Positions 8,716 through 64,000 are shown, counted from the first letter of the stretch. The stretch is DNA of 64,000 nt from Rhodosorus marinus CCMP1338 (GCA_029953675.1 JAMWBK010000009.1:124001-188000); one strand, 5' to 3'. Program-made: numbers and translations. The notes: generated from the letters alone by a model not told the origin.

Positions 8716-9749
8716 CTCTGGGTATGCACGAAGAGCCTGCGCAGTTCTCTCCTGACTCCTTTGTCGCCCTGAACATGATCAGGTGCGGCTAGAAGTACGA
8801 AGCTTGAACCTGTTCACCGATCGACGCCTGAGCAGTTGATCTAGTCGCATTCTTCTCCTGGCGACTATGTAAATTACATGCTCTATGTTCATACTCTCTT
8901 ACGTTGACTTATAAAACGTCCTCAACAAATCTGTCTCTAAGAGCTCGGAAGTTCCTCATTCAAGGTATTCAAGGTAGTAGGATTTCTAGTACAACCCATG
9001 GACCAAGCGAGAAGAATGTTGCTCGATCGTAACCAAAGCAGTTTTCTTGTGTCGTCCTCCAGGTTCACTCCAGCCCAAGGAGCCCAGTAGATTTGTTAGG
9101 ATTTGAGAGGTATCTCTGACCTGGCCTCCGCTGGTACAGACCTCTGTCCGATGCCTCAGAATCGAAGCCGGGTCTAGGGCTTCAACGTACACTCCAAACA
9201 TGAGAAAACCAAATCTCCACGAAATACAGTGTGGGCATATCCATTCAGGCAACGGATCACTCAGTCACGCTTCAAGTAACTCAGCGGCTCTGCACCATGC
9301 CAAAGTCCCGTCTCAGTAACCCGAGCTCGAATGCCGGGAAGTAGGGGTTTCAAAGATGTATACACTAATTTCATGCTGGAACTCATCTTTTCAACGTCCA
9401 TTTGATGAGCTCTGAATTAGAACCATGCACTAATTCTAGAAATATTATTCTAATTTTAGTCCGATTTTGAGAAGATTTTTTTCACAAATGTAAATTTCAA
9501 AATTCGAATGTATAGCCTCGATATTTCTCAGCATTTCTTGATAGGGTATTTCTAGCCGTTAAAAAAAATGCTCAGCGTCCACTGTGACAAGCTTGGGGGT
9601 TAGTGAAAGAAGAGCTGTCCTCAAGGCAGTAAACCAGAGGAACGTGGGATGGGCGTGTGAGCATGAATGTCAAACTTTGAGAAGTGACAGACGCGTTGAG
9701 AGAGGAAACATACACGACTCGTAAAAGGGCTGGCATCGATCACGGGAAG

Positions 9750-20190: not shown

Positions 20191-22310
20191 GAGCATCGAG
20201 TAAATGCATATCTTTGTACAGGGGCGTATGCCCAATTGACCAACATTAAAGATGAATCTACGCCATGCATTGCGTACCGGCGGCTGCACACGAACACCAG
20301 CAATTTTCAGGAGGCGGAGGTCCTTCTCCTGATGTGAAGCCTCGCCATCACTCCCAACAAAAATGATCACTCTTGCCGGGTGCATTCCTCAACTGACCGC
20401 GACTCACCCGTTCACAGCCGGCGGACCCATACGTGCCACAAGCCGCAGCAACGACTAGAATGCTGAACTCCAGAAGGACTGTCAACTTATGGAGGGACTA
20501 GTGCCACACATACGGGTTCCCTTACTAACCCCCCATGCTATGTCATTGCAATTGAAATCTTCTCGCGTAAGTCATAAGCCAGACTCTCCAATCACCAGGC
20601 GCCGCTTCCATTTTCCGTTATTTGCCACTTGACGCAGAAGAGCTTTGGTGCCCTCAATTCGATGCATTCCAACCATCAAAATTCCCCCCATTTTTTTTTT
20701 GAGCCTGACTCAAATCAATCAACATCGGAGAGAACTCCAATATTGATTGAGTTCAATCGGCTTCGCCAGATAATTAGATTGTAATTCTGTAATTCTTTGG
20801 AATCCACTTAGGCGGTGTCTCGGAAAAAATGATCCTCCGCAGAGGACTTATTGTTAGGGCTTCATAACAAATTATTCTTCCGGTGTACAAAGAGACACGT
20901 GGGGAGGGTTGATACGGTAGTTCGTCATTGTATTCAGGTAGTTATTGGCAGAAATCTGGAGTGCTTGATGTCCGCATGGAATAAGAAATTAGGGGGGGTA
21001 CGGTTGAAGCGCAGAGATAAATTGTTTCAAATTTTCAGGAGCAAGGAAAGGAAGACAATCACTAGGGGGGTCACGAAGAACACACCTGTATTTCGGTACC
21101 GTGTTTTTTTTTTACCTCAACCGATCTCGGAGAGCATATTGCGTAAGTTCATTGGTTATGATTGAACAGCTTGAACGAATAGATAACCAGAAAGCATGGT
21201 TTGGTACTCAGGCATCAGAGAAATTTTGAAACGAGGTAATGTTTTCAAGCGGCTTATCCGGTGGTAGGATTTTGTCTTTTTGAGGTTTCAAGGGTTAAAA
21301 TTCTCAGCTATTGAACGGGGGTTGTGGGGGGGGCGCCGGGGATTGAAACGGATAAAGAGGTATCCCAATCCGTTTTGCTTTTCTGTTTTTCTTCTGTTTT
21401 TCTGGAATTTTAATGTTGAATTGCTGAATATTGAGGCCAGCCGGTTCTCAGCTGTGGTCCTTTTAGATCAGCTCAAGCACCCCGGTAATGAAAACTCAGA
21501 ATTTGCACGTTGGATCTAACTGGATCTCTTGTTAAGGGGTAGGCGAGAGTCTTACTGTGCTAAAAGAATCTGGTATACAGGAAAACTGATAAATTTGTTA
21601 CGTGAAAGTGTTTTAGTGCCTGCATTAAGTTGATTGGTAGGTTGCAAGCTGGTGAACCCCTAAGGTCCCGACGCTAAGCAAAATCGGCCATGAGCGATAA
21701 GGGATACCCATTTCTTGTGGAAAATGCAAAGGCCCATAATTTGTTGGATGGCCTAGTGGTTCTCCTTGGGCCCGCTACAATTGAGGTGGGAAGAAATACT
21801 AGAACGACTTATAGGAAAAAAAAACAAAAAAACAGAGGGGAGCCGTTCTCGAGTGTGTATTGTATTGTACAGCCTCCGAGAGTCCCAGTGGAAACGGGTT
21901 AGGGGGTTGGTGGGCAGATCCCTTCTATCTTGTTTGGACCAAAACCGCTTCTTCTGAACTCAACAGTGGTTTTCAAAGGAGTGGGTTTACGGGGAGGGGT
22001 TAGAGAGGGGGGGGTTGGGGGTTATCGGATTCTAGATGCCCTTGTTGATGTGAATTAGTTTTGGTTCGGTTGACGTCTGGCGATCTGCAAGCTGGTTTTC
22101 AGTGTGCAAGGAGCGATTTGCTGAAAAATAAGCTGGTGTCCGGTGGTGAGAACGAAGTGAGGATTTGCAAGGTTCGACCCAATGTGCAGCTGGGGGCTGG
22201 GGAATCGATAAGGATTGGTGGGTCAGTTGCGGCGGAAAGGGCAAAGCTAAAGCTTTTTTTTTTTTCGTGTGGGGAGGTAGAAAAGTGAGACGGTTTCTCC
22301 CCTCTTAAGC

Positions 22311-24293
22311 ATGGGTACAGACAACGCCGGTGGGGCAATGCAAAACTTCCAATCAGCAGTCGCTGATACTGCGGGAGCCTCTATGAACGCAGTCGGCGGG
22401 GCAATGCAGAACTTCGGATCCGCGGTCGCCGGCACTGCAGGGGCTGCCGGTGGGGCTGTGCAGAACTTCGGATCTGCGGTCGCTGGCACTACAGGGGCCG
22501 GCTTCAACAAAATCGGTGAGGCGGTTCAGGGCTTCCCATCCGCGGTCGCCGGCACTGCAGGGGCAGTCGGTGGTGCTGTGCAGAACTTCGGATCTGCTGT
22601 TTCCGGTGCGGCTGGATCGGTCGGGAACACACTTGGTGGGGCAATGCAGGGCATACAATCTGGTGGCACTAAAGCGCATACGGAAACAAAGAAAAAGGCC
22701 TTGGTACCAAAGAAGAAGCCTGCAGAAGCAAAGAAAAGGGGCGTGGAAGCCGAATCAGAGGCAGTTGGAGGGCCACTGCAGGGCTTGGGGTCTGCGCTTG
22801 CTGGTTCCGCAGGGGCCATAACAAACGCAGTTGGTGGAACAATTGTGGCCATACCGTCAGCGGTTGGTGGGACGATTGGGGCCATACCGTCAGCAGTTGG
22901 TGGGACGATTGGGGCCATACCGTCAGCAGTAGGTGGGGCGTTCGAGGCTCTTCCGCGTCTACCCGCAGTTTTTATCGGTGAGACGATTACTGGTATGCGG
23001 TCAGCAGTGGGTGGGTCTATCCAACACGTGCACACAGCAGCTTCTGATACTTTTGTGGCCGTGAAAGATGCCCGAAAGACCCTACTAGCTGGTGCAATAG
23101 CAGGAACGGTGTCTCTCGTTGTAGCCATACCTTTGGATGTTCGAAAGACCATTGTGCAGAACTCCTCAGCAACGAGCATCAAGGCGTTATCGCAAGTCGT
23201 GAATTCGCAAACGAACCCCTTCGCCGGACTGCAACCCTCATTTGTGGCGCAGATTCCTGCAGCTGTAGTTGCCTTTGCTGTTTATGAATTCACCCGCGGT
23301 ATGATTAAGGGAGCGGAAGGAAACGAGGCTCTGCGCAAGGCGAAGCTGATTTTCGCTGCTTGTACCAGTGACGTCGTGGGAGCTCTGTGGGTCACCCCCT
23401 TTGAGCGGGCGAAACAGAGAGTAAGTCTCACTTGAAGGTCTTGAACTGTCTATCTTTTCTGTTGTTTAACACGGCGGCTCTTGTCCCCTTTGGTCTCGTT
23501 TCACCTGCAAAGATTCAAGCCCCGGCAGGCTCGAAGTATAGCTCTCCGGCGAAGACCACCAGCCTCAGTTTCCAACAGAGATACAAAGGGTTCTGGGGCC
23601 TGGCCATGCGTGATGTGGGTTATCGCTTTTTGTTCTTGATGGCACTCGATGAGGCGAGAAAGTTCGCGGAGAAGAAGCTCAAGCGCTCCCTGACTTCTGT
23701 CGAGAGCTACGGGGTTGGAACCTCAGTGGTAATGGCAATTCGCCAGCTCAGCTAACTCCCTTTCAGCTTTCGGCAATTGAGTCTCACATGCTAGATTATT
23801 GTTCCTACTTCCCACCCCTCGTGTAGGCCGTCGTCTCTGCTCTGCTGACTAATCCGCTGGACGTCGCCAAAACCCGAATTATGTGTGAGCGCGAAGGTAT
23901 TGCAAGCACGTATTCCACGTTTGGTAGCGCGTTCTCTGGGACTCTTGAAAGAGAGGGGTTGAAGGGTCTTTTCCGGGGGGCGCTTCCCAGAGTAAGTGGT
24001 TTCCCTTCCTTTAAATTGCTTGGGGAATTTTGAATGAAAGCGAAACGCAAGTCGCTCAGCAAGAGCTTAGATCCTGAGTAAACCGTTCCTGTCTGTGATT
24101 TCGTTCCATGACTTAGGTTGGATATGTCGCGGTTACATCGGTTGTCTTCATGACTGTCTTCGACCAGGTCATGAAGAGGATGGACGCTCCCACAACCACT
24201 ACGGCAGCTAGTTCAACGAAACCCTGGTCATCCAAAACGCCAGCCTACGTGAATTCCGCTACTATTTCGAGAAATCGAAGAACAACAAACTAA
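22311..24293 (+). CDS. Mitochondrial carrier family (SLC25) protein, SAM-carrier-like, with long repetitive N-terminal extension
   Basis: Three carrier signatures PLDVRKT, PFERAKQR, PLDVAKTRIM; GLKGLFRGALPR|VGY; three introns; TAA 24291-24293. Confidence 0.9.
22329..22650 (+). repeat. Coding repeats GGA(M/V)Q(N/G)F(G/P)SAVAGTAG spaced 22/18/22/18/22 aa
   Basis: Near-identical blocks such as gcagaacttcggatc(c/t)gcggtcgc(c/t)ggcact recur. Confidence 0.9.
22827..22958 (+). repeat. 4 x 33-bp coding repeat AVGGTI(G/V)AIPS
   Basis: Units at 22827, 22860, 22893 and 22926 (last degenerate). Confidence 0.95.
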
Positions 24294-45840: not shown

Positions 45841-46142
45841 CCTCGCCAAACAAAATCACCCCCACCTTCCCCACCAACCAACCAAACAACAGACCCTCCC
45901 CAACGCCCTTTCCCACAGCTCCAAAATCACCTCAATCCTAAAGGATCTCTACCAGAATGTCCACCCACCCCAACCCCTCCCAATCATCCCTTCCCCTTAA
46001 CCCCCCCCCCTCCATCCCAGATCTCTCTACCAAACAAAGATCCCCTTAATATAGTATTAAGATAGGCTCCTAGGCACCAGGATACCCCCTCTCCCCTCCT
46101 ATCATCCAAATCCCATTCCCCCCATTTTTCCGTATTTTTCCC

Positions 46143-46225
46143 TTTTCCCCAGTTTCCAACATTTTCCCAATTTTCCCCGTTTTCCCCATTTTCCCCATTT
46201 TCCCCGTTTTCACCATTTTTCGCCG
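46143..46225. repeat. Degenerate 9-bp tandem repeat (TTTTCCCC[A/G])n upstream of argD
   Basis: About 8-9 units, e.g. ttttccccg ttttcccca ttttcccca ttttccccg. Confidence 0.85.
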
Positions 46226-47217
46226 TTTCTCCGTCCCATTATCCAACACGGAGTCTTCCGTCAATAGGTTGGTTCAGATTACGCGTCTCAAAATTAGATT
46301 GGTGTTCATAAGAAAAGAAAATTAATTTTTCAATATTTGTTTTCTGAATCTAATTATATTAATAATAAAAATCCGCCGACATATCCATTTGTTTTACAAA
46401 ATAAACCGATTCTTAAGTACAAGTTATAGTATTTCAAAAACAATTCTTTTAACCAATAGACGTGCTGATCTTTTCGTCGATTATCCAATTATTAATTCAT
46501 ACTAACAGTTTAGTTGATGTTAATTGGACTATTATGGTGTGGGAGACGAAAAAACTTCCACAAGATCTAATATTTTTTTAGCGAATAATAGCGCGTGAAG
46601 GAGGCTTTGTTCTTTCTCGAGTTGTTATTTTTAGTATGTTTTGGTTGATATTTTTTTGGATTTATTGGAGCAGGATGGATTTAGAGCTCCAAATAGTGGA
46701 ATCTGGTATTGTACTGTAAGGAATACGATATTGGCGATAGTCGATGCTCGACAGAACCTGTTGTGACCGCTTCCATCGTCTGAGCTGACCAAGGCAGACG
46801 ACTGGAAGGACGGGAGTAGTACCCATCTTAATCAGGCCCACTCTTACCTTTTTTTTAAACAAAAAAATCGCGGCCTGCTTTTCACAGGCTCTTGGAGTTT
46901 TTGCAGATATCTCCATTCCATTGCTTGTGCGTTGGGGCAATAGCTCTTGTATCCAACCTTTAACACGGAGTTTATGTCAGCAGGACTCTGCCTGCACGCA
47001 ACAGGCGAAGGGTGTTCCTCCCTACTATCGGCGGTTCTCAATCTAGATTTTGAGGTTGTCAGTGCTCGTTGGTGAGGCTCCATGTGGAGATTTAGTTCAA
47101 AGTACAATGTTAGGTCTAGGCTTTCGCTGTTGCCGTGATGCAACAACCATATGGAGTTAAATAAACGCGCTCATTTCTTCTAGCGTGCTTGAAACGAGCA
47201 ACTGATGAAGAGACCTG

Positions 47218-48748: not shown

Positions 48749-49600
48749 ATGGAGTTCAGCTTTCCTCAATCATCCATGGAAACCAAGCAGGCAGAAAAAG
48801 CAGAAGGTCTGTCCACTAGGTTAATCTAGCCCCTTCGATCTGAGAGTCTGTAAGTGACTTAAGTAATGAAATAGTCGGTTGCCAGAGAGAACCCTGGAAC
48901 TCCTCTCGCTGGTGGGCTCTTTGTACTCCGACAATCGTGAATAATAATGTAGATCCTTCTATTGAAGTTCTCAATGAAGAAACCTTCTAGATCAGCTTGA
49001 CGACTGCCCCGCCCGGTTCCCTACGCCCCGCGCGGATCGGAGGATTTTCTGTGACCGTGACTCATTGTGGATAGAACCGTGCCTGAGACAGGAGGCTCGG
49101 GTATTGTAAAAGAGCTCGGTCCACCTCGATGAACCCATGGTGCTCTACATTGCTTCCAAGGCCATGAAAGTAAAGTTTGGCAACGCGTGCTCGGACACGG
49201 TTGACTTAGACAGTCCTAGAACCTCGAAGCCAACACGGTTGTTGGTTCCTTCCTGCCCTTCGGGGAAACTACATCAGTACAGAGATCAACTCATGTTTTT
49301 GTGAAGTAGTAGAGCAGCAGGAACAAGCAATCTAGCAACTAGCGTAGCGAGCTCAGACTTGTCGCTGATACAGGAAGTTTCAGACTTGACGGCGCTGATA
49401 CAGGAAATACACCGGTTCCTGGAGGGCTATGATCCAACTGAACCACTGCAAGTCCTTCATTGTAATGTGAATCTACAAAACTTTCTGCAAAACAAAAGGT
49501 TTGCCACTGGGAGAAAGGTTTCCACTAGTGCCGTCTACAATCCAAGGACCGAGAGTTATACGCAGCGGCGTATCCTTCAGAGTCATCACAGCCAGGACTA
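48749..49600 (+). CDS. Possible hypothetical protein (fragmentary)
   Basis: ATG 48749; open segments MVLYIASKAMKVKFGNAC and SDLSLIQEVSDLTALIQEIHRFLEG (33-bp duplication); structure unresolved. Confidence 0.25.
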
Positions 49601-52600
49601 GTGAGTTCTCAGCGTCACTCTTGACAACGCCTTCCATAACATAGAAATCATTCTGCGGTCCAAAGTCGTACAAATATCTGCCAATGAAAAGATCGTTCAC
49701 CCAAGCACATACAACGACGCTGTCCCTCGCCTCAAACTTGAGGCATAGTGGAAAGCGGTAAGACTGTTCAGGTCCTTGGAAACTGGTCCGGAGCCACTGG
49801 ATTCCATCTTCAGTCTTGAGGTCCAACCCCATGGGTGATTCTCCGGGAATTGAATCCCAGCTTGGGTTGTCCGAATCGAAACTTTCCGCGACAGCTTCGT
49901 CTTCCAGAGGAAGCCCGGTTGTGTTGAATGGGTCGTTCAGCGAGGAGACCGGCACTCCGTAGACGTCCCACCGTTGGTTCCGAGCGGGGCCAGACAACGA
50001 TGCAGAGATCAATCCACGACGGTTGCGAGCGTCATTGAGAAGGAACGGTTGCCTGCTTTGTCCCAGACTCATAACTGCGATAACAACTTGGTGCGATGCT
50101 TTTGCGGGGTCCAGGTATTTCGTCAAGTTGACCCTGCAAGGAGCAACCCAAACAAGAACATAAAATTCAGGGCAGGCTCATTAGTGCGCCACGCGATGGG
50201 CAGGCAGGAAATCCGATGCACTCTGACAGTGTAGTGCTTGTGCACGTACCTCTTCTTCCCCGCCCAGGTCAAATCTACTGCGTGCATTGCTCCAGCAGAG
50301 ATTCCGTTGTGGCTGTAACAAAACTGGCCTTCAACAGCATGGCCGTCGCAATACACCATAGCAATGTGCCTTATGTTCAGCTTGAGTGACACCTAGACAA
50401 CGTTGGGTAGCGATAATCGAACCAAAATCAGGTGACTTTTCCAGCCGGAAGTGTGTGTTTCCGGGTCGGACTTGAGAACCACATGGAGCGATGTGGGCGT
50501 ACCTTTGCACCTCCAGAAGCTTCGAAAGTGCAGCGATATGTTGTGTAGCCAGAAGTAAAGTGGTGATCAAGAGGATCCCTTTCGGTAGCATAGTCAATCT
50601 TCTTCCATTCGACATCCGTAGACCAGTTAATCCTCCGTCGTTTCCAGCTTTTCAGAGGGAGGTAATGTCCGTCGGCCGCAGGAAGAACTGAATCAATACT
50701 CGGCGAAAGTGAGAGTTTGAAGGCACCAGGTAGGACGTCCTGAACGACAGACGCAACAGGAATGAAAGAAGGGTCCGGAGGGCTGGTACTGCTTCCGACA
50801 TAGTAAACTGTCCTATCATCCCGGCCGGCTTCGATGGAGACCTCGCCGCTTGGTAAAATGCAGATCTCCTCTGCACCCCACGCGCAGGCAAATTCCGCTT
50901 TCGCCGAGGGTGCGTACGAATCGCTGGAGGAATCCAGAAGGGCAGTGAAAGTTTTCGAATCCTGTTCACTGATAGCCAGCATTCTCATCAAAACAGCTCC
51001 GTTCTGATCGAGCAGAGTAGTGGCACAGGGACCATGGAAAGCCAGTGAAACGCATTTCCCAATGTTTGCTTCCGTGGACGCCGACACGTCGACTGGTAAC
51101 GACCCGTTCTCACCACCTTCGAGATCAGCTTGCGAGAGCTCCTCTAGGGGTGCCTTCCATTGAGATTCGCCCGCGGTTTTATCCGAGGAGGACACCTTCG
51201 ATGACCCTGTTATGGTACCATCAATGGTGGTCCACTGCACTTGAACAGACGTCAAATCCCCTCTCACCCTAAACAATACCCTACCGAAAGGATGGTCGGA
51301 GAGGCTGAGAACCCACAGTTCCGCTCCGGCGACCACGCCTCGCGTAACGACGGGTATTGTACTCAAGTGCATGGTGATTCCATCAGTAAGCTGAACATTT
51401 GCGGGCAGAATCAGCGAGTCTTTGAACGCCAACTCGCAGGGGAAAGCGACATCATTGTACGCAAGGGTAAATCGAGATCTTTCTAGTTTTCCAGTGCTTG
51501 AGAAGTTGCGGAGAAAAAGGAAACGCGACTTCGTCGAGTCTCCACCATCGCCTCTCGCTGCACGACGAACTTTCACAAGCAGATTGGGCAAGCTGCAGGA
51601 AATCAAGCTCGAGTCCGCAACCGATTCCGCGATGCCATATTTAGCGAACGATCTATGAAAAAGTGCCTTCAACCGCAACCGCCTCCCTCGCTCTGAGACC
51701 TTCCCAAACTCCCGAATGTAGGCTGAATAGTCATAAGATGTATACACTTCAGAGTCTCCAGAGGCGCCGTAGTTGGTGCCGCCATACGCAGTGTAATAGT
51801 TTATAACCGTGAGTCCCTGCGCCGCTAGGGAGCTGTGCAAAGTCGCTGAAAATGAATCGCCAAAATAATTGTACAAATCGTCGTAGTCTCGTTTCCTCGC
51901 CCACTGGTTGATCCACCCTACTTGCGTCTCTGCACACACCACGGGAGCTCCTTCCGCAGCTCCTCCTATGGCGTCAAACCTTTTCTCCAGAGTGTCAATG
52001 TACCCAGCTAGACTCTTCGTGTTCCAGCCATTAGGTGGCGGAGTTGTTCTGCGCAGAAATCGAATCCGAAAAAAACCAGAAAGGAAATTCAGAGAACGCC
52101 TGACAAAATTGGAAAGCAGGACAACGTCCCAGGACTTGATTCTACTCTGGTTGGATCCCTTATGCGGGTGCTCACCTCTCACCAACAGCTGAGGTACTCT
52201 TGTAAAGACAATGAATACAACCGAGATCGTCTCCACCAATACCCAAGCCGCCAATGCAGAAGAATTCCAGAAACGCTGCACACCCCGCGATCTGAAAAGG
52301 CCCAACCGCGAGTGAGGATCGATCGGCACGATCATCACGAGGTGCGAAAACGAAGTAAAGGTCGACACCGTAAATGTCCGTCCTGTACTGCGGGGTAGAT
52401 GGAAGCCAGCAATTTTTGAGATAGTGGTTTTTCTTTCCCGTTGCCCAAGATCCATGGGGCATGTCGTCGTTGTGAAAGAAGGGAACCGTAGATCCGCTTT
52501 CTCTTGCACACGAAGCGAGGGATCTCATCTCTTCGTCATCAGCGAAAGTAATTCCGGGCACCTTATGGAGCAGTTCATTTTCGATCTGCAACAAAATCAC

Positions 52601-53146
52601 ACAGCCCGTCGGGTTGGTCGTCCTTTCGTGGTTTTTGATAATGGCAAGAATGTTCCGGTAATAGATGTTCTGGTATTCTGCTAACTTGGCATCAAACTTT
52701 TTCATGAAGTGTCTCTTCAGATGGCGGATGCGTACATTCCGCTTCGCAAGGAGCCAGGTTGGGAATCCTCCGCCCTGGGTCTCAGCGCATATGTAAGGTC
52801 CAGGCGCTGCAATTACGAAGAGTTGCAATTCTTCGCAAAGATTGAACAGTTCCTCGATATCTCTAGAGCCATCACTGATGAAAGCATCCTCAGACGGGCT
52901 GTGGTAACCCCAGTGGAAGTAAAACCGGACCGTATTGAGACCCAGAGACTTCATCTGCAACAAGATTCGCTTCCATCTGGATCTATCAGGAATTCTCCAA
53001 TACTGAAACTCCCCAGATACAATGACAGTCGGCTTTCCGTCGATGAACATACATTGACGAGACCAATTCACCCTCGATCCATATTTCTCAGCATTGTACT
53101 TCGTTGGTTCAGCGCTGGGATTAGCAGCGACGAGCACATCCTTCAT
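49473..53146 (-). CDS. GH35 beta-galactosidase with C-terminal beta-sandwich domains, no signal peptide
   Basis: SGEFQYWRIP; GLNTVRFYFHW; PGPYICAE..GGFPTWL; LLQIENE (acid/base); AETQVGW (nucleophile); NYYTAYGGTNYG; YTSYDYSA; FIGRY..DFGPQNDF. Confidence 0.93.
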
Positions 53147-55445
53147 GGCTTCCTTCCTGAAAAACAGGAAATAGGTACTCTATTCTTCCCACGAAAAGGG
53201 ACAGAACTTCAATCAGTCCAGTCACACGCTTCCGCTTCAAAACAGTATGGGTAAAGAAGGTCTCGTGATCACCTTCCCCGACCAAGGCCTTGCTCTCCCT
53301 CAAAAGTTTTTGTGACCAACAGCGGACAGTTTCCCAGCATATGAACCCCGTTCGGGTGCTCAGCGCCCAGCCTCACAAGTTGAAAGCGGCTTGGGAACCA
53401 TTTTGCACGGGAAATTTGATGTTAGCTTGTTGCCGTGCAACACTTTCTTCCGGGATGTTCGATCTCGTTCTCCCAGGTGCTGGAATGACATAGTTTTGGG
53501 CTATCATGCGCGCAGACTTTGTTATGTGTCATTGATGCAGGAGCGATGTTTGGTATTGACTTCAGGGCATGTTGACCTGTTGAGTGTGCTCCTCAAGGAT
53601 AAAGCTTGCACCTGACTTCGGTTGGATTTAGCAAGTTCTGTCGACGTCAGCTAAAGATTTGCCGTGAAAATCGACAACGGGTTTTCTTCTAGCCCTAGGT
53701 TCAGCAGTATCCCAGGTAACGGAGAGAGACAGGAGCTTATCAGACGGAGTCTTGAAGATAGTACCCGCGATCCGTCATGGGACATTGCTAGGGACAACAA
53801 AAGTTGATACGGGGCAGTGAAACGATCTGTTCTTTTCGGAAGGGACGATCGCGAGAACAATAATTTCATTGTCAACCGACAGAATGTCGCAAAATTTCTC
53901 CTCTCATAAAGCTGAGTCCATCGTCATTGAGACTGCAACCCCGTTCAGTGAAAGCCTCAAATTGAATAAGCCCTCCGTCATAGTTGTGTGATCTAACATT
54001 ATCCATATTTTTGTTGAAGCCATCAAGACAAGAATTTGAAGCTCTGTCATGCGCACAAATGAACTGCAGGCCGCGGATTTGGTCGTAGATCGGAGTGCTA
54101 GTGAGTTGGATCCTAACGAAACCAACTCGTGATTCACACGTTTCACAACTCTCTGAAAAAAAAAAAATAGGCCAGAGCTTGAGACTTGCCCTCTCTTATG
54201 CGTACAAGAGTGTTTTTCATCAGGGGACCACACTGTATGCACGATTGTATGAGCACGTACATGCCAACGTCGTGCCCCACAGGGTCGCGTACAATCGCAT
54301 ACTAATAATCTCCCATCGACAATCAATAACGCTTTCCCATCGATATTGTCATCCTCCAAATACAACCAGTTTCAGTAATCCAATCAAAACAAGTGGAAAA
54401 TATTAAATATTATTGGCATCATGTCATGGAAACGACTGAAATTCTTATGACACTTAGACTCTCATTGGAGTACCGGGAGTTCAAATTTATTTCATTTTTT
54501 CAAAAAGCAATACCTTCAAAGACCCAACCCATGTATTTCTACTAATATTCAACCCCGGATGGATGGCCACAAGTCGATGTGAACTTCTTTTTTGAGGTTT
54601 TCTTTTTTACCTTGTAGCAGTATTTTCGAAATAAGTTTACTCATTATTGAGGTTCGTAGAGTCAAGGAAGCAATTCCCTCCATAAGACCTGGGACCAAGA
54701 TGGATCATAATAGGTTTTAAACCTATTAATATCTTACTATCCTTAAAAGAAATCCTCTAAAATAACAATTTAAGAACACAATTGTGTTGATCAGAGACCA
54801 GGCGCTCCAAATTTGAGCGAACTACTACCATATAGTTCTAAATATTATATAAAAAAGCACGAATCATAATCTGAGATTTTAGATGGAATAAATATTTTAA
54901 AGTAAGTACATATTGTATATGAATTCCTGGACTTCATAAACTCACTCGGCTCAATTGATTGTCCAATCAGTTCACCGCTGATTTCTAGCCAAGGCTTCCC
55001 AGCCAATAATCATGCAGACTCTATATCCCAACCCCACCCCACCTTTTTCCTTGTTTCTTCAAAGCTACACAGATTTTTCCTTAATAGTTGAAGAAAAATC
55101 GAACAAGTCGTTTTTAGAATTTCGATGGTTCCGGACCGGTGCGATCCGGTGCGATCTACTTTTTCACCCGTCCTGAGGAATTGTTGATATTTGTTCAGCG
55201 ACAAAATGGTAAGGGATAGGTATAAATACTGTTTCAGTTGATCGTATTGAGTTTTACTTGATTTAGTTCAGTATTTAATATTCTCATGACATTTTGTAGG
55301 GGGTTGGGTTGTGTACAAGTACAGGATTTGATCTCGATCACTGGTGGGGGCTGGGCAGATGCACGGTGTGTGAGTTTGGGAGTATGGAGGTTTTGTGGGG
55401 TATATATGGAAAGGGTGCAACCAAGTTGATGAACGCTTTGCTGGG

Positions 55446-56648
55446 ATGAGATCGGAGGCGATGGCCGACTGGGGTAGAAGATTATTGAAGAGAATATTTG
55501 CTGAAGTTTCAAGTGGAGGTGGATTGCGCAGATCAAATTCTGAAGGGTTGAAGGTGCGTGGTTTTGCTGAAACTGCGAACATGGCAAAGGCACCAACAGT
55601 TAAGCTGGCCAATGGGGCGGAGATGCCGGTGATCGGTCTTGGGACGTGGAAATCTCCTCGTGGCAAGACCGGGGACGCGGTTCGAGCTGCAATTAAGGCA
55701 GGATATCGGATGATTGACACCGCGAACGATTACGGAAATGAGGACGAGGTCGGAGATGCCATTAAGGATATGATCGACGAGGGGGTTGTCAAAAGAGAGG
55801 AGCTGTTTATCCAGTGCAAACTGTGGAACACCAACCATCGCAAGGATCACGTGAAACCAGACCTCATGGCGACACTGAAGGATCTGAAGCTCGACTACGT
55901 GGATTCCTTCGCTGTCCATTGGCCGCAGGCATGCCCGGCGACTGGGGAGGCGCCAGCTCTTGGAGCGGACGGAATCGACCCAAAGCCCAGGGACCAGCCC
56001 ACGATGTTCCCGCTTGAGGCTGATGGCATGTACGCATGTGATTATGACTGTCACTTCATGGAAGCATACCACGCCATTGAGGATCTGGTTGACGAAGGCC
56101 TGGTCCGTGGAGCTGCAATCTCCAACTTCAACGCCAGGCAGGTGCACGAGGTCCTGGAGAACTTCAAGAAGCATCCCCCAGTCGTCCTCCAGAACGAGTG
56201 CCACCCTTACTTTCAGCAAAAGGACATCGTTGATGTGTGCAATAACAACGGAATTGTGTTCCAAAGCTACTCTCCCCTTGGATCGGGAGATAGGCCGTGG
56301 GCCAGGAAGCCTGGAGAAGTCGAGCTCCTGGACGATCCACGACTGCAGGAAATCGCGACCGCCAAAGGCAAGTCAGTCGCCCAGGTGGTGCTACGGTGGC
56401 ACATGGACCGGGGAATTACCGCGGTGCCGAAGAGCATTACCCCATCTCGAATTGCCACGAATATAGACGTTTTTGACTTCACCTTGAGCCTTGAGGAGAT
56501 GAAGTTGTTTGACAAGCTCAACCAGGCAAGGAGGTTCCTGATGTGGGATCCGACCTCGCTGCATCCGGATTACCCCTTCAGGGACGACCTTCCGTTCGGA
56601 TACAAGACCGCACAACCACTCAAGGTTGCTGCTCGCGCATCGAAGTAA
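55446..56648 (+). CDS. Aldo-keto reductase, intronless; possible N-terminal targeting peptide (core starts at ATG 55581)
   Basis: MPVIGLGTW; GYRMIDTANDYGNE; REELFIQCKLWN; HWPQ; ISNFN; LQNECHPYFQQ; YSPLGS; QVVLRW; VPKSITPSRI..N..VFDF. Confidence 0.95.
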   Translation: MRSEAMADWGRRLLKRIFAEVSSGGGLRRSNSEGLKVRGFAETANMAKAPTVKLANGAEMPVIGLGTWKSPRGKTGDAVRAAIKAGYRMIDTANDYGNEDEVGDAIKDMIDEGVVKREELFIQCKLWNTNHRKDHVKPDLMATLKDLKLDYVDSFAVHWPQACPATGEAPALGADGIDPKPRDQPTMFPLEADGMYACDYDCHFMEAYHAIEDLVDEGLVRGAAISNFNARQVHEVLENFKKHPPVVLQNECHPYFQQKDIVDVCNNNGIVFQSYSPLGSGDRPWARKPGEVELLDDPRLQEIATAKGKSVAQVVLRWHMDRGITAVPKSITPSRIATNIDVFDFTLSLEEMKLFDKLNQARRFLMWDPTSLHPDYPFRDDLPFGYKTAQPLKVAARASK

Positions 56649-57048
56649 CCAGAGGAGTATCGCCCGTGTGCGCCATCGCCCAAGCCGTGGATGATCAACA
56701 CATTTAGAGCTAATCGTCCGCGCTAGGACGAGACCTTGAAATAAAAGATAACTCTTTTTTTTAACGAACCCAACTTTCCTCCAGACTATTTCGACAATGA
56801 CGCCCACATAGACCTTTGGCATGCCCTTCGAAAAGCGAAGACTTTCCAAATCTACTCTACCCTTCAAGTTCATGTTCCTTTCACAGTGACCTTCATTTCA
56901 GGGACAGACCACTACGGGCGCAATACAACGACAACCTCGGAGAGAAGCTCGACCGGAAAGCAAACTCATCCCACCGCGCTCCCTTCCCCGCCTCTCGCCG
57001 GTAGGACGAGAGATGAAAAGGGCGTGAACTGTCACCTAACCGTCCGAA

Positions 57049-57869
57049 CTAATACTGAACGAGTTTCTCCGTAAACTGAAAATAGTCAATCATGCCGTCC
57101 CGATCGACGTTAGCTTCCTTAATCATTTCATCAGCCTGCAGGAGGGGTATTCAGTGGGTGAGGAGGCGTGCAAAAATCGATTCAATGTTTCAAGCACGAG
57201 CGTTCCATACCTCTGCATTTGTCAGTTTCTCAACTCCTCCTATCGTGGTCATAACGTGACGCAGTTCCGTTGCAGCGATTTTTCCCACACCCTCCTAATT
57301 AAAACAAGTATGCGCAATAGCCAGAGTCAACGATCTGGAACAGCACTCCATAAAACCATCCAAAGACCGAATTCGGAGCATCGCAGCAGACCTTATCAAA
57401 TACTCTGAAAGCTTCACAAACTTCTTCTGCAGTGAGTCCAGTTCCTTTGTTCTTTTTCATTACCGACTCAAAAACTGCCAAAAGAAAGATCATCAAAAAT
57501 ATCAGCTTTCCAGCATCAAGCAAACAACGACGGTAATGAGCGGGTGTTTCATTCATACCCGAATAATCAACAAGCCCAGTGCTTTGAGGATCAATCTCAG
57601 TAATGATCTGCTTCACCTGAGCCTGAGTAGGGCAAGCTCCGAGAGACCTCATCACAGTACCAAGCTCATCCGTTGTAATCTTACCTAAACCACACAAACA
57701 TCACCAGGGAAGGCAAAAAGAACTCCTTTCAAAACGCTAGAACAAACAACTGCTAAATCAAGCTCCACAGCTGCCACTCCAAATCAAACTTACCGTCCCC
57801 ATCGCGATCAAACAAGTTAAACGCTTCCTTGATCTCTTCCTCCTCCTCCTTACTCAGCTCACCCGCCAT
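57049..57869 (-). CDS. Calmodulin-like / myosin-light-chain-like 4 EF-hand protein, 5 exons
   Basis: MAGELSKEEEEEIKEAFNLFDRDGD|GKITTDELGTVMRSLGACPT...|...EAFRVFDK|EGVGKIAATELRHVMTTIG...|ADEMIKEANVDRDGMIDY. Confidence 0.93.
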
Positions 57870-58842
57870 CTCTACACACACCACTCAAAATCTGCGAACT
57901 TGACGAACTCTAAACTCTGCAACAGATCCAAACAATAAATCAATGCCTTCACAACCTCACATTTCCCACCTGCAACCGACCCCAATCCTCATCCCCCGCC
58001 TCTCCCGTCCCACCACATCACCATCCTTAATATCCTCCCCCGCTCAAAACCCAAAACCCTCTCTGAAATCCCACAAGAAAATATATTTCCGAACAAACAA
58101 AAGCAGTCCCCCTCTGAAAAACTTGCCTACAAAATCTGGAACACAATATATCTATACAAATCATCACCATATTTCTCCCAATATCTCCAAGTCACCTCCC
58201 CCACTTTTGCAGAATTAACTCCCAATATTTACGGTCGATATTTAAATTATTCTCATTTTGAAATGCGCTTTTCTCCTTGAGCTGCGCAGGGGATAAGGAA
58301 AAAATCCATAATGATAATAAAAAAGCGGGAAATTCACGGTTTGGAGAATTATTGCTCTTTAAAAAGGTATATACCTTTTATTTAGAATTTATCGTCGAAA
58401 TAGATCAGAAATGCACATAACTCTAGAACCCATGGAGTTTAGATTTGTTCCCAAAATCAAGCATATTTTAAAATGGTGGATCTTTTTATTTGTTCTTCGA
58501 TAGGCTAATAATCTTTTATTTGGGATGGAACTTCGTTCTGGATCATTTTCGAAGGTATTTTAATGCCCAATCTGGTTTGCGTTGTTTGAAGTTGTCCTAT
58601 TTACTCCATTTTCAACAAAAATAGTTGTGCGAGTAGGATTAGAGGCATTGTTCAGGGTTGGTTTGAGGAGTAGGAGAGAAGAATGAGGTGTGAAGCCATC
58701 TTCATCGCAAATGTCCCTACTCCTAGACGTGGGGCTTCAACATCAAGAGTTTCTCAAAGCTGTTTACTGTTTACCACCTTGTACTTGTACGGTGACTGAT
58801 TTGTCGAAAGCCTGGAGAGCATTGGATTGCTGTTGCTAGGCT

Positions 58843-59813
58843 TCAACGCCTAGCAACAGCGCCACGATACCACTTGTTCAGCGTCTGTGCTGGAACTCCC
58901 AAGTAGAAGCCGGCGACAATGATCTGATTCAAAACTGTGGTTCGGAAGACCCCAAACTCTTCCCACCTCCGTCCACTAGTGACCTGTTGAAATATAGATA
59001 CGTCAGTCTGGGTCAATCTTCCCTTCTCTCTGCGTTGCATAGACAGCAATTGTCTGGAGTTGAGGGACTCACTGCACTTTCGTTCGCAGTGATCACTCGG
59101 CCAAGCCGTTTTGCATTCCTGGCCATTTGAAAATCTTCCATGAGTGGTATGTCGGGAAAACCACCCAGTTGGTTGAAAGTCGTTCGTCGCATGAAGAAGC
59201 CCTGGTCACCGTACGGCATGCCGAAGAACCGACTTCTCAGGTTTGCTACGGCTTCGATGAGCCTAATCCCCCGAACATTGGAATCGATCTTAAGACGGAA
59301 AGCGCCTAGGCTAACGGTTTCATCTTGCAGGGTTGACCTTGAATATAAACCAACCCGATCTGTTAGCGCTCTAGAGGAGAACGTAAGTATTGAAGGTTGA
59401 TGTATGGAACAATTAATCTGCACCCATACCGAACAACTTTGTCGAATCCAAAGGGCAATCTGGTGTCGGCGTGCAAGAAAATCAAAAAGCTTCCCTCCGC
59501 GCTTGGCACTGCGTTGTTCAGCTGAGTTCCTCTACCTCTTCCTGCTTGTATCAACCTGTGAAGAGGTGTAACCGTTTGCGGCGTCTAGTAAGAGGCTTCA
59601 ACAGAAAACGTCCGGACGAGAGGACCATGCATACCTCGCTTTTGCTGTTTTCACCAACCGCTTCGTGCCGTCTACAGAGCCGCCGTCAGCAACGACGATA
59701 TCCAGACGAGTGTCCTTTTCCACAACACCCTCACGCAGTGCCCTGATCGTCGACGCTATCGATCCCTCTTCATTCAATGTTGGGATAATGACCGAAACTA
59801 CTTCATCTCTCAT
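58843..59813 (-). CDS. GT2 glycosyltransferase of the TIGR04283 (rSAM/selenodomain-associated) type
   Basis: VSVIIPTLNEE; ADGGSVDGT; GRGTQLN; LIFLHADTRLP; GAFRL; YGDQGFF; GGFPDIPLMED; TSGRRW...RTTVLN. Upstream exons (to ATG 60240) possible. Confidence 0.9.
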
Positions 59814-60182
59814 TAGTAGACGAACAGATCCTCAAGCACGGAAGACCTCGAGTCAAAGATCAACCGCCCAACTCCACTATTTCCTCAGGTGAAAGACTCC
59901 AATCGAGTTCGGTTGACACGGAACTCACTTGCAAGCTCATGTCATGGTAGAACACAGGATGATCCGCACATGCAGCAACCAACGAGAAAGTGCTTGTGGA
60001 CGTGCAGATCTCTTACCAGCCCTCTTGGGGTTGGATTAGTCTGCGGTTACGCTCTCGCGGCATGGCACGTCCCAACGGGTGGGGGTGGGGGAGACCCGCG
60101 AGGCAGAGCGGGACGAATCCTTTTTCTTTGCTATTTGCCACAGCAAGCAACAGTTTCCCGAGCTTCCCGGGTGCCCTCCGTG

Positions 60183-60236
60183 ATCCGTGCTCTCTCGGGT
60201 ACGGCTGCTCTCTCGGGCATCCGTGCTCTCCCGAGG
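60183..60236. repeat. 3 x 18-bp imperfect repeat
   Basis: atccgtgctctctcgggt / acggctgctctctcgggc / atccgtgctctcccgagg. Confidence 0.75.
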
Positions 60237-60358
60237 CCATAAGATCGGAGACGCATCTCAGTTGGGCGGGAAGGGAGCTGAGTGGAATTAGGTATTTGTG
60301 AAGCTTGCTCGGCAGATCACGACGGAAGCTAAAACACTGGTTTCTCGTCATTTTACGA

Positions 60359-61550
60359 TTAGCGGAAGCTGTAGAACAGAATTCTTGACCACATTTTAGA
60401 AACGAACCCTAGCAAACGGCAGAATGAATACCATTCGTCGTCACGAAGCTTCGGCTTTTTAACCCTCACAAGACAAAAAACTAAGGGATGCGATCTAAAA
60501 GGTCTGCTTTCGGGCATTGAGAATGCTCGATAGACTCCTCGCTTCGAACGCAAGTTTGAATGCGAATCGATCAACTTGTCCCTCGGAGTGCATACGGAAT
60601 TCAGAGGAAGTACGGAAAAATTGTAGACTTTGGGGCGGCTTTGAAAATGAAACTTTACCCCACTGCCGCGCAGCTCAAGGCTAAGCAGTAAATAGCCGGA
60701 GCCCTGCAGCGTTGTGTTCTATCGAACCACGTAAATAACTTCGACATTACCCTGTTTGTTCAACTCTTGCAAAGTTCGTTTTAAGCCCATTTTATACTAT
60801 TTGGAACCGCCCAACGAAACGGGTTCTGCAGTGTTTGGGCTCGTTGAAAGGAAGTTCGCCCGCCTATGCAAGGGCGACCACTCCCTTGGTGGACTCGTGA
60901 TACTGCAAATCGGATGCCAGAGTTGCGCATGGTGAGACGAGTGAAACTAGATTGCTCTTTTCGCTTTCCGTTGCTTCCCACAAGCATCTGACCCAATCAA
61001 CTTCTCGCTATTCGAGTACTTTGCAGCCACAATGTAGAGACTCCAGCACACGTGGAGATAGCTCAAGCAGCAAAGGAAATCAAGCACTTTCAAGGCGCGT
61101 AGCTCCGCATCAGAACGCAGCAAGATCGATCTCAGCTTCCCCTACTCAAAATGACGTACGTGAAGGAAGTGCCCAAACCTCGATATGACCGTCGCGATAA
61201 AGCCCGCGAATTCACCGCAGGAGAGCTCGGACCTTTAATCGACTGCAATCCAAAAAACCCCGCAGCAATATAAGAGAGTCCAGACTCTTCATCTAACCTA
61301 TTCTACAATCCTTCACAAGTGTTCTGGCACGTAGCTTCCAGACACATTTCCGCAGACGAAACAACGCTGGCAACTTCGCAATAAGCGGAGAACCTTTAAG
61401 AAGGTCCTCCGAGCATGGCACAGGTCAGTAAGCGTTGTACCAAGCAAGCTCATCGACCGCCGCCATGGCGTATTCTCGCGTCTGCCACCCATGCGCTGTC
61501 TAGTTCCTTCGGGCATCCTCCATTCCAGGCCCCACCAACACCCGCTAGCC
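60359..61550 (-). CDS. Possible spliced hypothetical protein
   Basis: Several open segments bounded by GT/AG (e.g. YKMGLKRTLQELNKQ; LELRGSGVKFHFQSRPKVYNF); no family recognised. Confidence 0.25.
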
Positions 61551-62718
61551 AAAATACTAAACCCGCACTATCAATCCATTGAAGTACTAATATTTACAAT
61601 AAACAAGGACAAAAAGAAACGATAGTACAATAAGATTCTCATACACTAATTTATTGAGAAATTCATTTCATCCAACGCGCTGGAACGCGCGGACGTCGAC
61701 GAAAAAGTATCTGCAAAACAGTAGGGGACCGAAACTGTCTAATTATTCAACAGAAAATCTTTACAAAAATTAATACTTCACTTTCATTGGATAATTTATC
61801 CGGAAGTAACCAATGAACAGTCAGAAGAATCTCATACGAACATGGATCGGGATGGGCAATCTTAATTTTTTTTCAATGAAACTAAGTCTTAGGCAATAGT
61901 GCCTCATGCTGAAGAAAAATTCAAGGTATCAGTTCAAACCCATTGGAAGACAAAAAAAACGAAAAAAAAGGAATACCCCTGGAAGATTCAGTCGCACCTT
62001 ACATTCAGATTCGAACCAATCATTCGATTCAGAGTCACCAAGGGATGGCCGTACAAAGACACGATTGGTCCTATTCTTCCAACACCCGATAATATCTACT
62101 AAAAACAATAAAATATAAATCCCCAAAGAATGAATTTAGATACTATATGACAATATTCACAAACCCGTTGGACCGAAAATTAATTATTGATTGACTAATA
62201 TATGAATTCATAATATTTAACCATTATTCAGTCAATATTCGCCCATCCGGTGTATAAAAATAATTAAAAACGAATTGCGGTACATTAAAACTAAACGGTC
62301 TTGTATTATATGTGGAAAATTCGATATCAATAAGAACAAAACAAAAGGAGCCGCCTGGGGGGGAGGAAGAGGAGGCAGGAGGAAGCTACTATTCCCTTAT
62401 TTTTGTATCAAGTTTCTTTTTTCGTTTACCCTTTTCAAGAGTTGGGACAGGAGCCTTGTGTTTTTAGACATTTTGAGAGGTTTATGGGAGTGAAGGGGAA
62501 GGGGGGTTCGGGGGAGCATTTCGCAAAGGAAGTTTGGAGGATGTTAAAAGGGAGTAAAAAAATTGATCATCTTAAAGGAAGTTTTGGGGTTGAATGGGAG
62601 GCAAGTTGAGATTCGGATAGGAGGATGGGGTGGCGGTGGTCGCTGTGTGTGGATGGGTGATTAATAGGATGGGTTATAAAGAGGGGAGGATGTCAGTGGA
62701 GTGTTTGAGTGACGACGG

Positions 62719-64000
62719 ATGTATAGTTTGAAAGGATGGAGAGGAATAGAGCCTGGCTTTGGTGTTTGGGTCAGGTCTGGAGTTGACGGGAGCGGTGTGA
62801 GAGGAAGAAGAGCGGTTTGCGAGATGGGGATGATGAAGGAGTCTTCTCTGCCTGGGCACGCGTGGCCATTGAGGCCCAGGACTGAGGTGAAGTATCCATT
62901 ACAAAAGAGCATCGTTCGGTTTGTCATGGGACACCCTCGGAAGAATGTGCCCTGCGTGCAGCTGAGAGATTCAGATGAGTCGGAGTTTGCAATCGTAGTC
63001 GAGGCCGGTGCGATGCGCGAATGCCTAACTATCAGGAACGGCTTTTGTGAGGAGTGGATTGACGTGGAGTATGAGGATATTGAGCAATTGGAGATCATGT
63101 TCAGAGTTCAGAAAGGTGGTGTCGAGATTGGCAGACTGGCGATTCTGGGTACAGATTTGCGGGAACGACAAGGGTCTCTTCGAAAGCCGCTCATGGAGAA
63201 CAGCGTTATTGGATACTTGACGATTGACTATCTCGTAGTTACCAACTTGCCAGCAGCTGAAATGGCCACCGTAGAGGATGGCATCAGCAACGTTCGGGCT
63301 CCAAGATTTGTAGGTCACCGGGGCTCTGGTGCGAAAGGTACCTCTCCATATATGGAGAACACTGTGCTAAGTTTCGTAAACGCCACGAGGACATCTGATG
63401 TGACACATGTGGAGCTGGACGTGCAGCTAACAAGGGATGGTGTACCAGTCATCTTTCACGATTTTCACGTTCCATTGAAGACGAACGACGAGAAAGCTTC
63501 ATGCATGGTTCCTATTTGCTCCATGACAAGCCAACAGTTTGTCGATTTGGATCCAGCGGTCTTGTGCGACGACGACACTCACCTGTCCGACGATGATTCT
63601 ACGTTGAGGTCCCGAACTAGCGTTAGGGCGCCGTTCAAAAAGCCAAGGGCGCGAGTCGAGCTGGGAGGGCCGGTGAAGGATTTAATGCCGAAGCTTGCAG
63701 ATATTTGCAATGAGGTAAGTGCATTGACTTTTTGTGCTCGAATAAGCCACTTTGGAAACGGACACTCAATAGCCTGTTCGCACCTTCCTACCATGTTTGT
63801 GTACATAGTGCCCCGTTGAAATCGGACTAATGATCGAGCTCAAGTACCCGACGCTAGAGTACCTCGAGGAGTACAAGATTCATTTTCCAAGCCGAAACCT
63901 CTTCGCCGACAGAGTCTTGGAGACAGTCCTGGAGACGGAGGGAAACTCAAGGAGGTCGATTATTTTCCTCACTTTCGATGCCGACTTGGCCATGATTTTC
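62719..64000 (+). CDS. Glycerophosphodiester phosphodiesterase (GDPD/GPCPD1-like), partial, runs off the right edge
   Basis: FVGHRGSG; ENTVLSF; VELDVQLTRDGVPVIFHD; after an intron IELKYP and IIFLTFDAD. Confidence 0.93.

Follow-up and report, generated by a model that had tools for sequence, protein, structure and literature searches.

We found that the red alga Rhodosorus marinus has an expressed, spliced nuclear gene for a glycosyltransferase which is almost certainly a member of the TIGR04283 family, named in NCBIfam the 'arsenosugar biosynthesis glycosyltransferase' (its earlier name was 'transferase 2, rSAM/selenodomain-associated'). The gene lies on the minus strand at 58843..59813 of the window, by which we mean the whole 64,000-nucleotide stretch that was analysed. 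The family itself is already known and named; what is new is a eukaryotic, horizontally acquired member. Taken together, the data are best explained by a transferred and expressed TIGR04283 enzyme of arsenosugar synthesis, a reading to which we would give a probability of about one half.

The coding span runs from an ATG at 59813 to a TGA ending at 58843. Its product of 236 amino acids is identical to P0001, the NCBI 'hypothetical protein NDN08_006492' [Rhodosorus marinus], and the only public labels it bears are 'hypothetical protein' or 'GT2-like domain-containing protein'. Exon 1 (59635..59813) encodes residues 1-59 plus 2 nt, including the IIPTLNE strand (residues 9-15) and the ADGGSVDGT nucleotide-binding motif (D43, S46, D48). 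It is followed by intron 1 (59556..59634; 79 nt, GTATGC...CACAG, phase 2), the junction of which is confirmed by the transcript-derived proteins P0002/P0243, and by exon 2 (59430..59555), which contributes GRGxGxQxN (Q71, N73) and FLHAD (F86-D90), the DxD-like metal/diphosphate motif. Intron 2 (59338..59429; 92 nt, GTATGG...TTCAAG, phase 2) ends at an acceptor located 33 nt downstream of the first frame-keeping AG. Exon 3 (59073..59337) carries GAF (113-115), R136, PYGDQ (143-147) and MED (E169, D170), and intron 3 (58984..59072; 89 nt, GTGAGT...AACAG, phase 0), whose position is common to two strains of the species, separates it from exon 4 (58843..58983), with TSGRRW (192-197), two C-terminal helices and the stop codon. 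An alternative exon model of 247 amino acids, in which the intron 2 acceptor was placed 33 nt upstream (59371/59370), was rejected: the resulting 'ALTDRVGLYSR' is absent from the annotated and the transcript-derived proteins, and the TIGR04283 score of this model was 220.8 bits, as against 234.9 bits with the downstream acceptor.

The splicing pattern could be compared with a second R. marinus strain (MMETSP0011), whose transcript-derived protein of 240 amino acids is continuous across all three junctions and is 83% identical to that of the first strain (86% over aligned columns). The second-strain cluster consists of three MMETSP0011 transcripts and one JGI contig and includes a full-length spliced form; the JGI contig (1687 bp) is intron-less and bears the same ORF. 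The earlier note on this DNA had described a gene that gained spliceosomal introns, and this is indeed what we observe, as all three introns are of the GT..AG type and their junctions are confirmed by the second-strain transcripts. One of these transcripts, P0242 (MMETSP0011 Transcript_25661), represents an isoform which keeps intron 3 and reads into it after '...SAV', so that its product would be truncated, without the C-terminal helices and the TSGRRW motif. Between the upstream in-frame stop and the ATG at 59813 there is no other start codon, and the transcript-derived protein begins at the same methionine; the protein thus has no targeting extension, and it is presumably cytosolic.

One could suppose that the gene entered the assembly through bacterial contamination, or that it is a relic of a transfer, decaying as a pseudogene, as the closest source-named relatives outside Rhodosorus are all bacterial among the best 120 matches. 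We regard this as barely credible, since the introns, the transcripts and the conservation of residues between the strains refute it. Moreover, the host contig (JAMWBK010000009.1 of GCA_029953675.1), to which positions 48843-64000 of the window are identical at every base, is 1.83 Mb long, the glycosyltransferase gene lies between eukaryotic genes, intron-bearing ones among them, its coding GC (0.515) and GC3 (0.536) are inside the range of the neighbouring genes, and the spliced copy of the second strain, despite its divergence, has kept every invariant residue.

Membership in TIGR04283 is evident from the profile comparison. The corrected protein aligns with the model from end to end (positions 1-221 of 221) and, at 234.9 bits, clearly exceeds the curated cut-off of 182 bits; the second-strain protein scores 233.6 bits. 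Pfam PF00535 (Glycos_transf_2), which is also the precomputed domain for P0001, was matched at 52.3 bits against a gathering threshold of 23.3, as scored on the 247-residue model. In an alignment of 91 unfused family members, all 28 invariant columns are kept in both Rhodosorus proteins, namely P11, D43, S46, D48, Q71, N73, F86, L87, H88, D90, G113, F115, R136, P143, Y144, G145, D146, Q147, F150, F156, E169, D170, G181, T192, S193, R195, R196 and W197, so that the hallmark motifs read from the DNA in the earlier note are fully present. Nearly invariant columns are kept in 34 of 37 cases, and the three exceptions (E38D, A54V and A76V) are conservative and identical in both strains. Such retention is far beyond what chance would be expected to leave in an alignment of this kind.

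It was plausible to ask if the protein belongs to some other GT2 clade, such as DPM1/GtrB/AglJ-like enzymes, glucosyl-3-phosphoglycerate synthases or carotenoid glycosyltransferases, and only resembles TIGR04283. Weak N-terminal matches to AglJ, GpgS, CruG and a dolichyl-phosphate hexose transferase do exist, one cyanobacterial family member is called a diaponeurosporenoate glycosyltransferase in UniRef, and the structural matches include GpgS and GtrB. However, AglJ, the next-best family, scores 45 bits where its cut-off is 325, and GpgS 41 bits where it is 262; MftF (TIGR03965, after which the 'glyco_like_mftF' model is named) at 22 bits and the dolichyl-phosphate hexose transferase profile at 16 bits are likewise below their cut-offs (280 and 375, respectively). 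These scores reflect the shared nucleotide-binding half only, the polyprenyl/dolichyl-phosphate glycosyltransferase profiles being matched by just the N-terminal ~90 residues, while TIGR04283 is matched over its whole length and above its cut-off. The best match is therefore not another GT2 clade, and an origin of the resemblance in such a clade seems very improbable to us.

The AlphaFold2 model built from the family alignment (pLDDT 94.3, pTM 0.91) is a single alpha/beta domain, for which a GT-A fold of the GT2 type can be predicted with confidence. A Foldseek search against the PDB returned only GT2/GT-A proteins as top matches (WrtF, PcManGT, K4CP, SpsA, GpgS, BcsA and TarS), and these were generic, with TM-scores of 0.55-0.69 and 13-23% identity. 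By sequence, the best solved structure was found at E = 6e-5, and neither sequence nor Foldseek searches of the PDB found a solved structure of a TIGR04283 member. GT2 enzymes share a layout composed of a nucleotide-binding Asp, a DxD-like metal site, an acidic base and a QxxRW-like motif; as far as can be judged from sequence, the succession of DGGSxDxT, xAD, ED and SxRRW in the Rhodosorus protein matches it. The best explanation of these features is a soluble TIGR04283 enzyme that is probably catalytically intact.

We next consider the origin of the gene. A single-sequence query was compared with a collection of 5.8 billion proteins, and the best 120 matches were considered. Two Rhodosorus entries were the only ones eukaryotic by label; every other source-named protein among these 120 was bacterial, most matches being unnamed metagenome proteins. 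The bacterial matches among them, at 40-50% identity, come from cyanobacteria, Desulfobacterota, Planctomycetota and Kiritimatiellota. When 134 sequences were analysed by neighbour-joining, the two Rhodosorus proteins formed a clade in 60 of 60 bootstraps. The comparison with bacterial sequences thus united the two algal proteins, but gave them no supported sister group: the sister varied by replicate, the best being an unnamed metagenome protein in 20 of the 60, and the bootstraps neither support nor exclude a cyanobacterial or plastid source. A bacterial origin of the gene is nonetheless highly probable. Because the source-named proteins among the best 120 matches are bacterial apart from Rhodosorus, the simplest reading is a single horizontal transfer from a bacterium to Rhodosorus, and an old one, since three introns, a host-like composition and divergence of the strains to 83% identity all needed time. 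The gene seems to be particular to this lineage and not to encode an enzyme of algae in general; this is a provisional view, as independent transfers into other algae could rank below the best 120 matches.

The evidence pointing to an arsenosugar role for TIGR04283 is entirely that of gene neighbourhood. The bacterial neighbourhoods were taken from 18 loci, in which 124 neighbouring ORFs were scanned against NCBIfam and 17 TIGR04283 ORFs were found. The association with TIGR04282 and ArsS named in the earlier note is reproduced: TIGR04282 is adjacent to, or fused with, TIGR04283 in 15 of the 17 scored cases, ArsS (TIGR04167, up to 440 bits) lies within 3.6 kb in six of the 17 loci, and six ORFs match arsenite methyltransferase, with clustering placing ArsM beside ArsS in four loci (at least four loci within 3.6 kb). 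A Pirellulales contig (L004) carries arsM, arsS, a PHO4-family transporter and a TIGR04282/TIGR04283 fusion, in that order, and the Nitrosomonas, Methylomagnum and Micavibrio loci have the same genes in different orders. TIGR04282 also matches Pfam CofC, a guanylyltransferase, and because of this match we suggest that it may be a nucleotidyltransferase. In three Desulfobulbaceae loci, the gene for a kinase of the APH/choline-kinase family (L002 6302-7342, L006 6308-7348 and L007 6272-7348) follows that for an ABC substrate-binding protein and immediately precedes TIGR04282 and TIGR04283. Kinase, nucleotidyltransferase and glycosyltransferase in this order resemble a cassette for the activation of salvaged sugars; the Pfam family of the APH/choline-kinase-like proteins also includes 5-methylthioribose kinase.

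Several other genes recur in these loci. VTT/DedA, DUF547 and FAD pyridine-nucleotide-disulfide oxidoreductase genes are found beside ArsS, TIGR04282 and TIGR04283, sometimes fused to each other (L004, L011, L013, L016-L019, L026), and in L004 and L013 a PHO4-family transporter gene is placed between arsS and the transferases. All of these may be additional components, as yet uncharacterised.

On the other hand, the same loci can be read as evidence that the TIGR04282/TIGR04283 pair is not specific to arsenic, with ArsS being an occasional neighbour and the stand-alone Rhodosorus enzyme, although active, serving some non-arsenic pathway. Such a pathway may build some other small glycoside or glycolipid; its starting material could, for instance, be a 5-deoxy- or 5-thio-ribose released as a by-product of radical-SAM/SAM metabolism, and a head group of membrane lipids is another conceivable product. 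ArsS is, after all, near in only those six of 17 loci; neither ArsS nor ArsM was found within 10 kb in three cyanobacterial loci, which do have DUF2064, nor ArsS within 8-10 kb at two of the closest relatives of the Rhodosorus protein. Membrane and redox proteins are what recurs beside the pair, stand-alone glycosyltransferase genes are found in bacteria too, and the Rhodosorus copy is without a partner gene in the ~70 kb around it. Against this, where arsM and arsS are present they share an operon-like run with the transferases (L004, L013, L017, L018), and all three families are labelled as arsenosugar genes by the NCBI curators. The VTT and oxidoreductase partners occur in ArsS-containing loci as well, and hence define no separate system. 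This is the main rival to the arsenosugar reading, and we consider it a real possibility, though one we would not favour.

The surroundings of the gene in Rhodosorus itself have a different content. In the ~70 kb around it (the 64-kb window plus 6 kb), no ArsS, ArsM or TIGR04282 was found, and when the 124 bacterial neighbour ORFs were compared with this region by tblastn, only the glycosyltransferase itself gave E<0.01. The adjacency to, or fusion with, TIGR04282 that accompanies the family in bacteria is thus missing at this locus; it is a feature of context and lies outside the HMM definition. Two weak tblastn matches (E ~0.05) to ORFs of 347-359 amino acids, located upstream of TIGR04282 in L002 and L007, were dismissed as chance ones, as they fall inside a degenerate gypsy-type retroelement; the ORFs in question are APH/choline-kinase-like and not ArsS. 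When the TIGR04282 domain of the closest fusions served as query in a profile search, the best 120 matches were all bacterial, each at 250 bits or more, and a Rhodosorus copy at ~45% identity would rank lower than these.

Downstream of the glycosyltransferase gene lie an EF-hand/calmodulin-like gene with introns (57049-57869, minus strand), a single-exon aldo-keto reductase gene of 400 codons (55446-56648, plus strand), whose product is DkgA/DkgB-like with scores below the cut-offs of these families and differs from the ~275-residue bacterial enzymes by an insertion and an extended N-terminus, and a GH35 beta-galactosidase gene (49473-53146, minus strand). On the other side, a gene for a GDPD-domain protein (glycerophosphodiester phosphodiesterase, 565 amino acids) starts 2.9 kb away and is transcribed divergently, on the plus strand, from 62719 to 64000 and past the window end (L001 5304-7095). 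Oxo-PO4, a major arsenosugar, is a glycerophosphodiester, and for this reason the pairing of the two genes is suggestive. Homologues of the Rhodosorus aldo-keto reductase and GDPD proteins were absent from the bacterial loci.

As regards repeats, the retroelement mentioned above is of the Ty3/gypsy type, occupies L001 1100-3800 (~66000-68700 in window numbering), contains integrase and reverse-transcriptase ORF fragments and is missing from the assembly gene calls. A strongly C/T-rich low-complexity stretch at 57900-58230 separates the EF-hand gene from the 3' end of the glycosyltransferase gene, near which neither a tRNA gene nor a notable repeat was found. Farther off, there is a (CCCATTTTC)n microsatellite at 46112-46234, and the long ORFs at 22281-23432 (plus strand) and 8430-8790 encode Gly/Ala-rich tandem repeats, with periods of 54/120 bp at 22393-22652, 33 bp at 22827-22937 and 18/36/54 bp at 8507-8661; their products resemble structural proteins of a repetitive kind, or low-complexity ones.

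Arsenic in edible seaweeds is present mainly as arsenosugars, which are also a major node in the marine cycle of the element. To our knowledge, ArsM and ArsS, the first two enzymes of their synthesis, are the only ones with experimental support, and the genetics of the ArsM/ArsS pathway were reportedly worked out in Synechocystis by Xue et al. in 2019. In vitro, DDMAA is formed when ArsS adenosylates DMAs(III) (PMC13598754), and for the steps after ArsS no enzyme is named (bioRxiv 10.64898/2026.04.29.721666). The literature we searched likewise names no enzyme for adenine removal or for attachment of the ribose to glycerol, in agreement with the view that this step has no characterised algal enzyme; this literature also contained no functional study of TIGR04283, TIGR04282 or DUF2064 and no report on arsenic speciation in Rhodosorus.

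The pathway we propose would rely on a gene of bacterial origin that Rhodosorus acquired long ago and that subsequently gained three spliceosomal introns. ArsM would provide DMAs(III), to which ArsS would add a 5'-deoxyadenosyl group, giving DDMAA. Adenine might then be lost either by phosphorolysis or through the action of a nucleosidase and an MTR-kinase-like kinase of the APH family, yielding alpha-5-deoxy-5-dimethylarsinoyl-ribose-1-phosphate, which the CofC-like TIGR04282 would nucleotidylate to an NDP-sugar. The glycosyltransferase would bind this nucleotide-activated sugar, 5-deoxy-5-dimethylarsinoyl-ribose, through D43/S46/D48 and the H88-A-D90 metal site and, with D146 or E169/D170 as the base, would transfer it with inversion to glycerol or a glycerol head group, producing beta-ribosides. 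Arsenosugars are beta-ribofuranosides and GT2 enzymes invert, which fits a route from an alpha-phosphate through an NDP-sugar to the glycosyltransferase. The same route would account for the kinase, nucleotidyltransferase, glycosyltransferase gene order and for the fusions. We infer the donor and the acceptor from the fold, the stereochemistry and the neighbours.

How far can this be applied to the alga? The proposal in the earlier note, that the gene may encode an algal enzyme of arsenosugar glycosylation, holds in so far as the protein is a genuine TIGR04283 member and the family is linked to arsenic genes in bacteria; the linkage itself does not extend to the Rhodosorus locus, with ArsS, ArsM and TIGR04282 all missing from its ~70 kb. 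Carrying the role over from the bacterial neighbourhoods is a reasonable hypothesis rather than a finding, and for an arsenosugar role in Rhodosorus we would put the chances at slightly under even. A bolder and rather unlikely version is that Rhodosorus captured the missing 'glycosidation' enzyme, which would place nucleotide-activated dimethylarsinoyl-ribose (derived from DDMAA via salvage of the MTA-phosphorylase type) on the free glycerol of phosphatidylglycerol or on glycerol, to give an arsenosugar phospholipid or Oxo-Gly, while the GDPD encoded 2.9 kb away could trim the deacylated Oxo-PO4 to Oxo-Gly. If true, a step beyond ArsS would thereby have its first algal enzyme, and the two genes would be a rare case of a functional pair in a eukaryote.

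As to what this means, TIGR04283 is the obvious bioinformatic candidate for attachment of the ribose to glycerol, and an intron-bearing, expressed eukaryotic copy indicates that the alga has kept the gene under selection since the transfer. Its value is limited by the fact that Rhodosorus is the only eukaryote among the labelled matches listed, that the partner genes are absent within ~70 kb and that the chemistry of the family is putative. Still, a soluble protein of 236 amino acids without a targeting extension is tractable for expression and assay.

Compared with known systems, the Rhodosorus protein is distant from the solved GT2 enzymes, namely the WrtF fucosyltransferase (9omh-9omn), PcManGT (6yv7), K4CP, SpsA and GpgS. 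The GT-A fold is common to them and the DGGSxDxT and xAD motifs align, but identity is limited to 13-23%, TM-scores to 0.55-0.69 and E-values are no better than 6e-5. With bacterial TIGR04283 proteins (for instance Coleofasciculus P0005 or the Pirellulales fusion of L004), it shares the full-length HMM match, the length, the predicted GT-A fold and the invariant residues, among them D43, S46, D48, Q71, N73, FLHAD, PYGDQ, ED and TSxRRW. The Rhodosorus gene differs in that it is a nuclear gene of a eukaryote, is monocistronic and has three introns, and its product is at most ~50% identical to the bacterial members among the matches listed.

The TIGR04282-TIGR04283 fusions, which join DUF2064 to GT2 (P0004, P0039 and the triple-domain P0246), contain in their GT2 half the closest relative outside Rhodosorus, at ~50-52% identity among the matches listed. 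The alga, by contrast, encodes the GT2 half only, and its product begins five residues ahead of the first strand. P0246 (L026 7796-9739) is a protein of 647 amino acids with the order GT2 - DUF2064 - GT2; the protein cluster to which it belongs includes one of the bacterial sequences closest to the Rhodosorus enzyme, and its gene adjoins one for a GT87/MptA-like membrane glycosyltransferase. As for the cyanobacterial ArsM/ArsS pathway, the glycosyltransferase represents an enzyme class different from ArsM and from ArsS, the latter being a radical SAM protein. The step it would fill, the transfer of arsenoribose onto glycerol, is the one that has no named enzyme in that pathway, and in some genomes its bacterial orthologues are linked to arsM and arsS.
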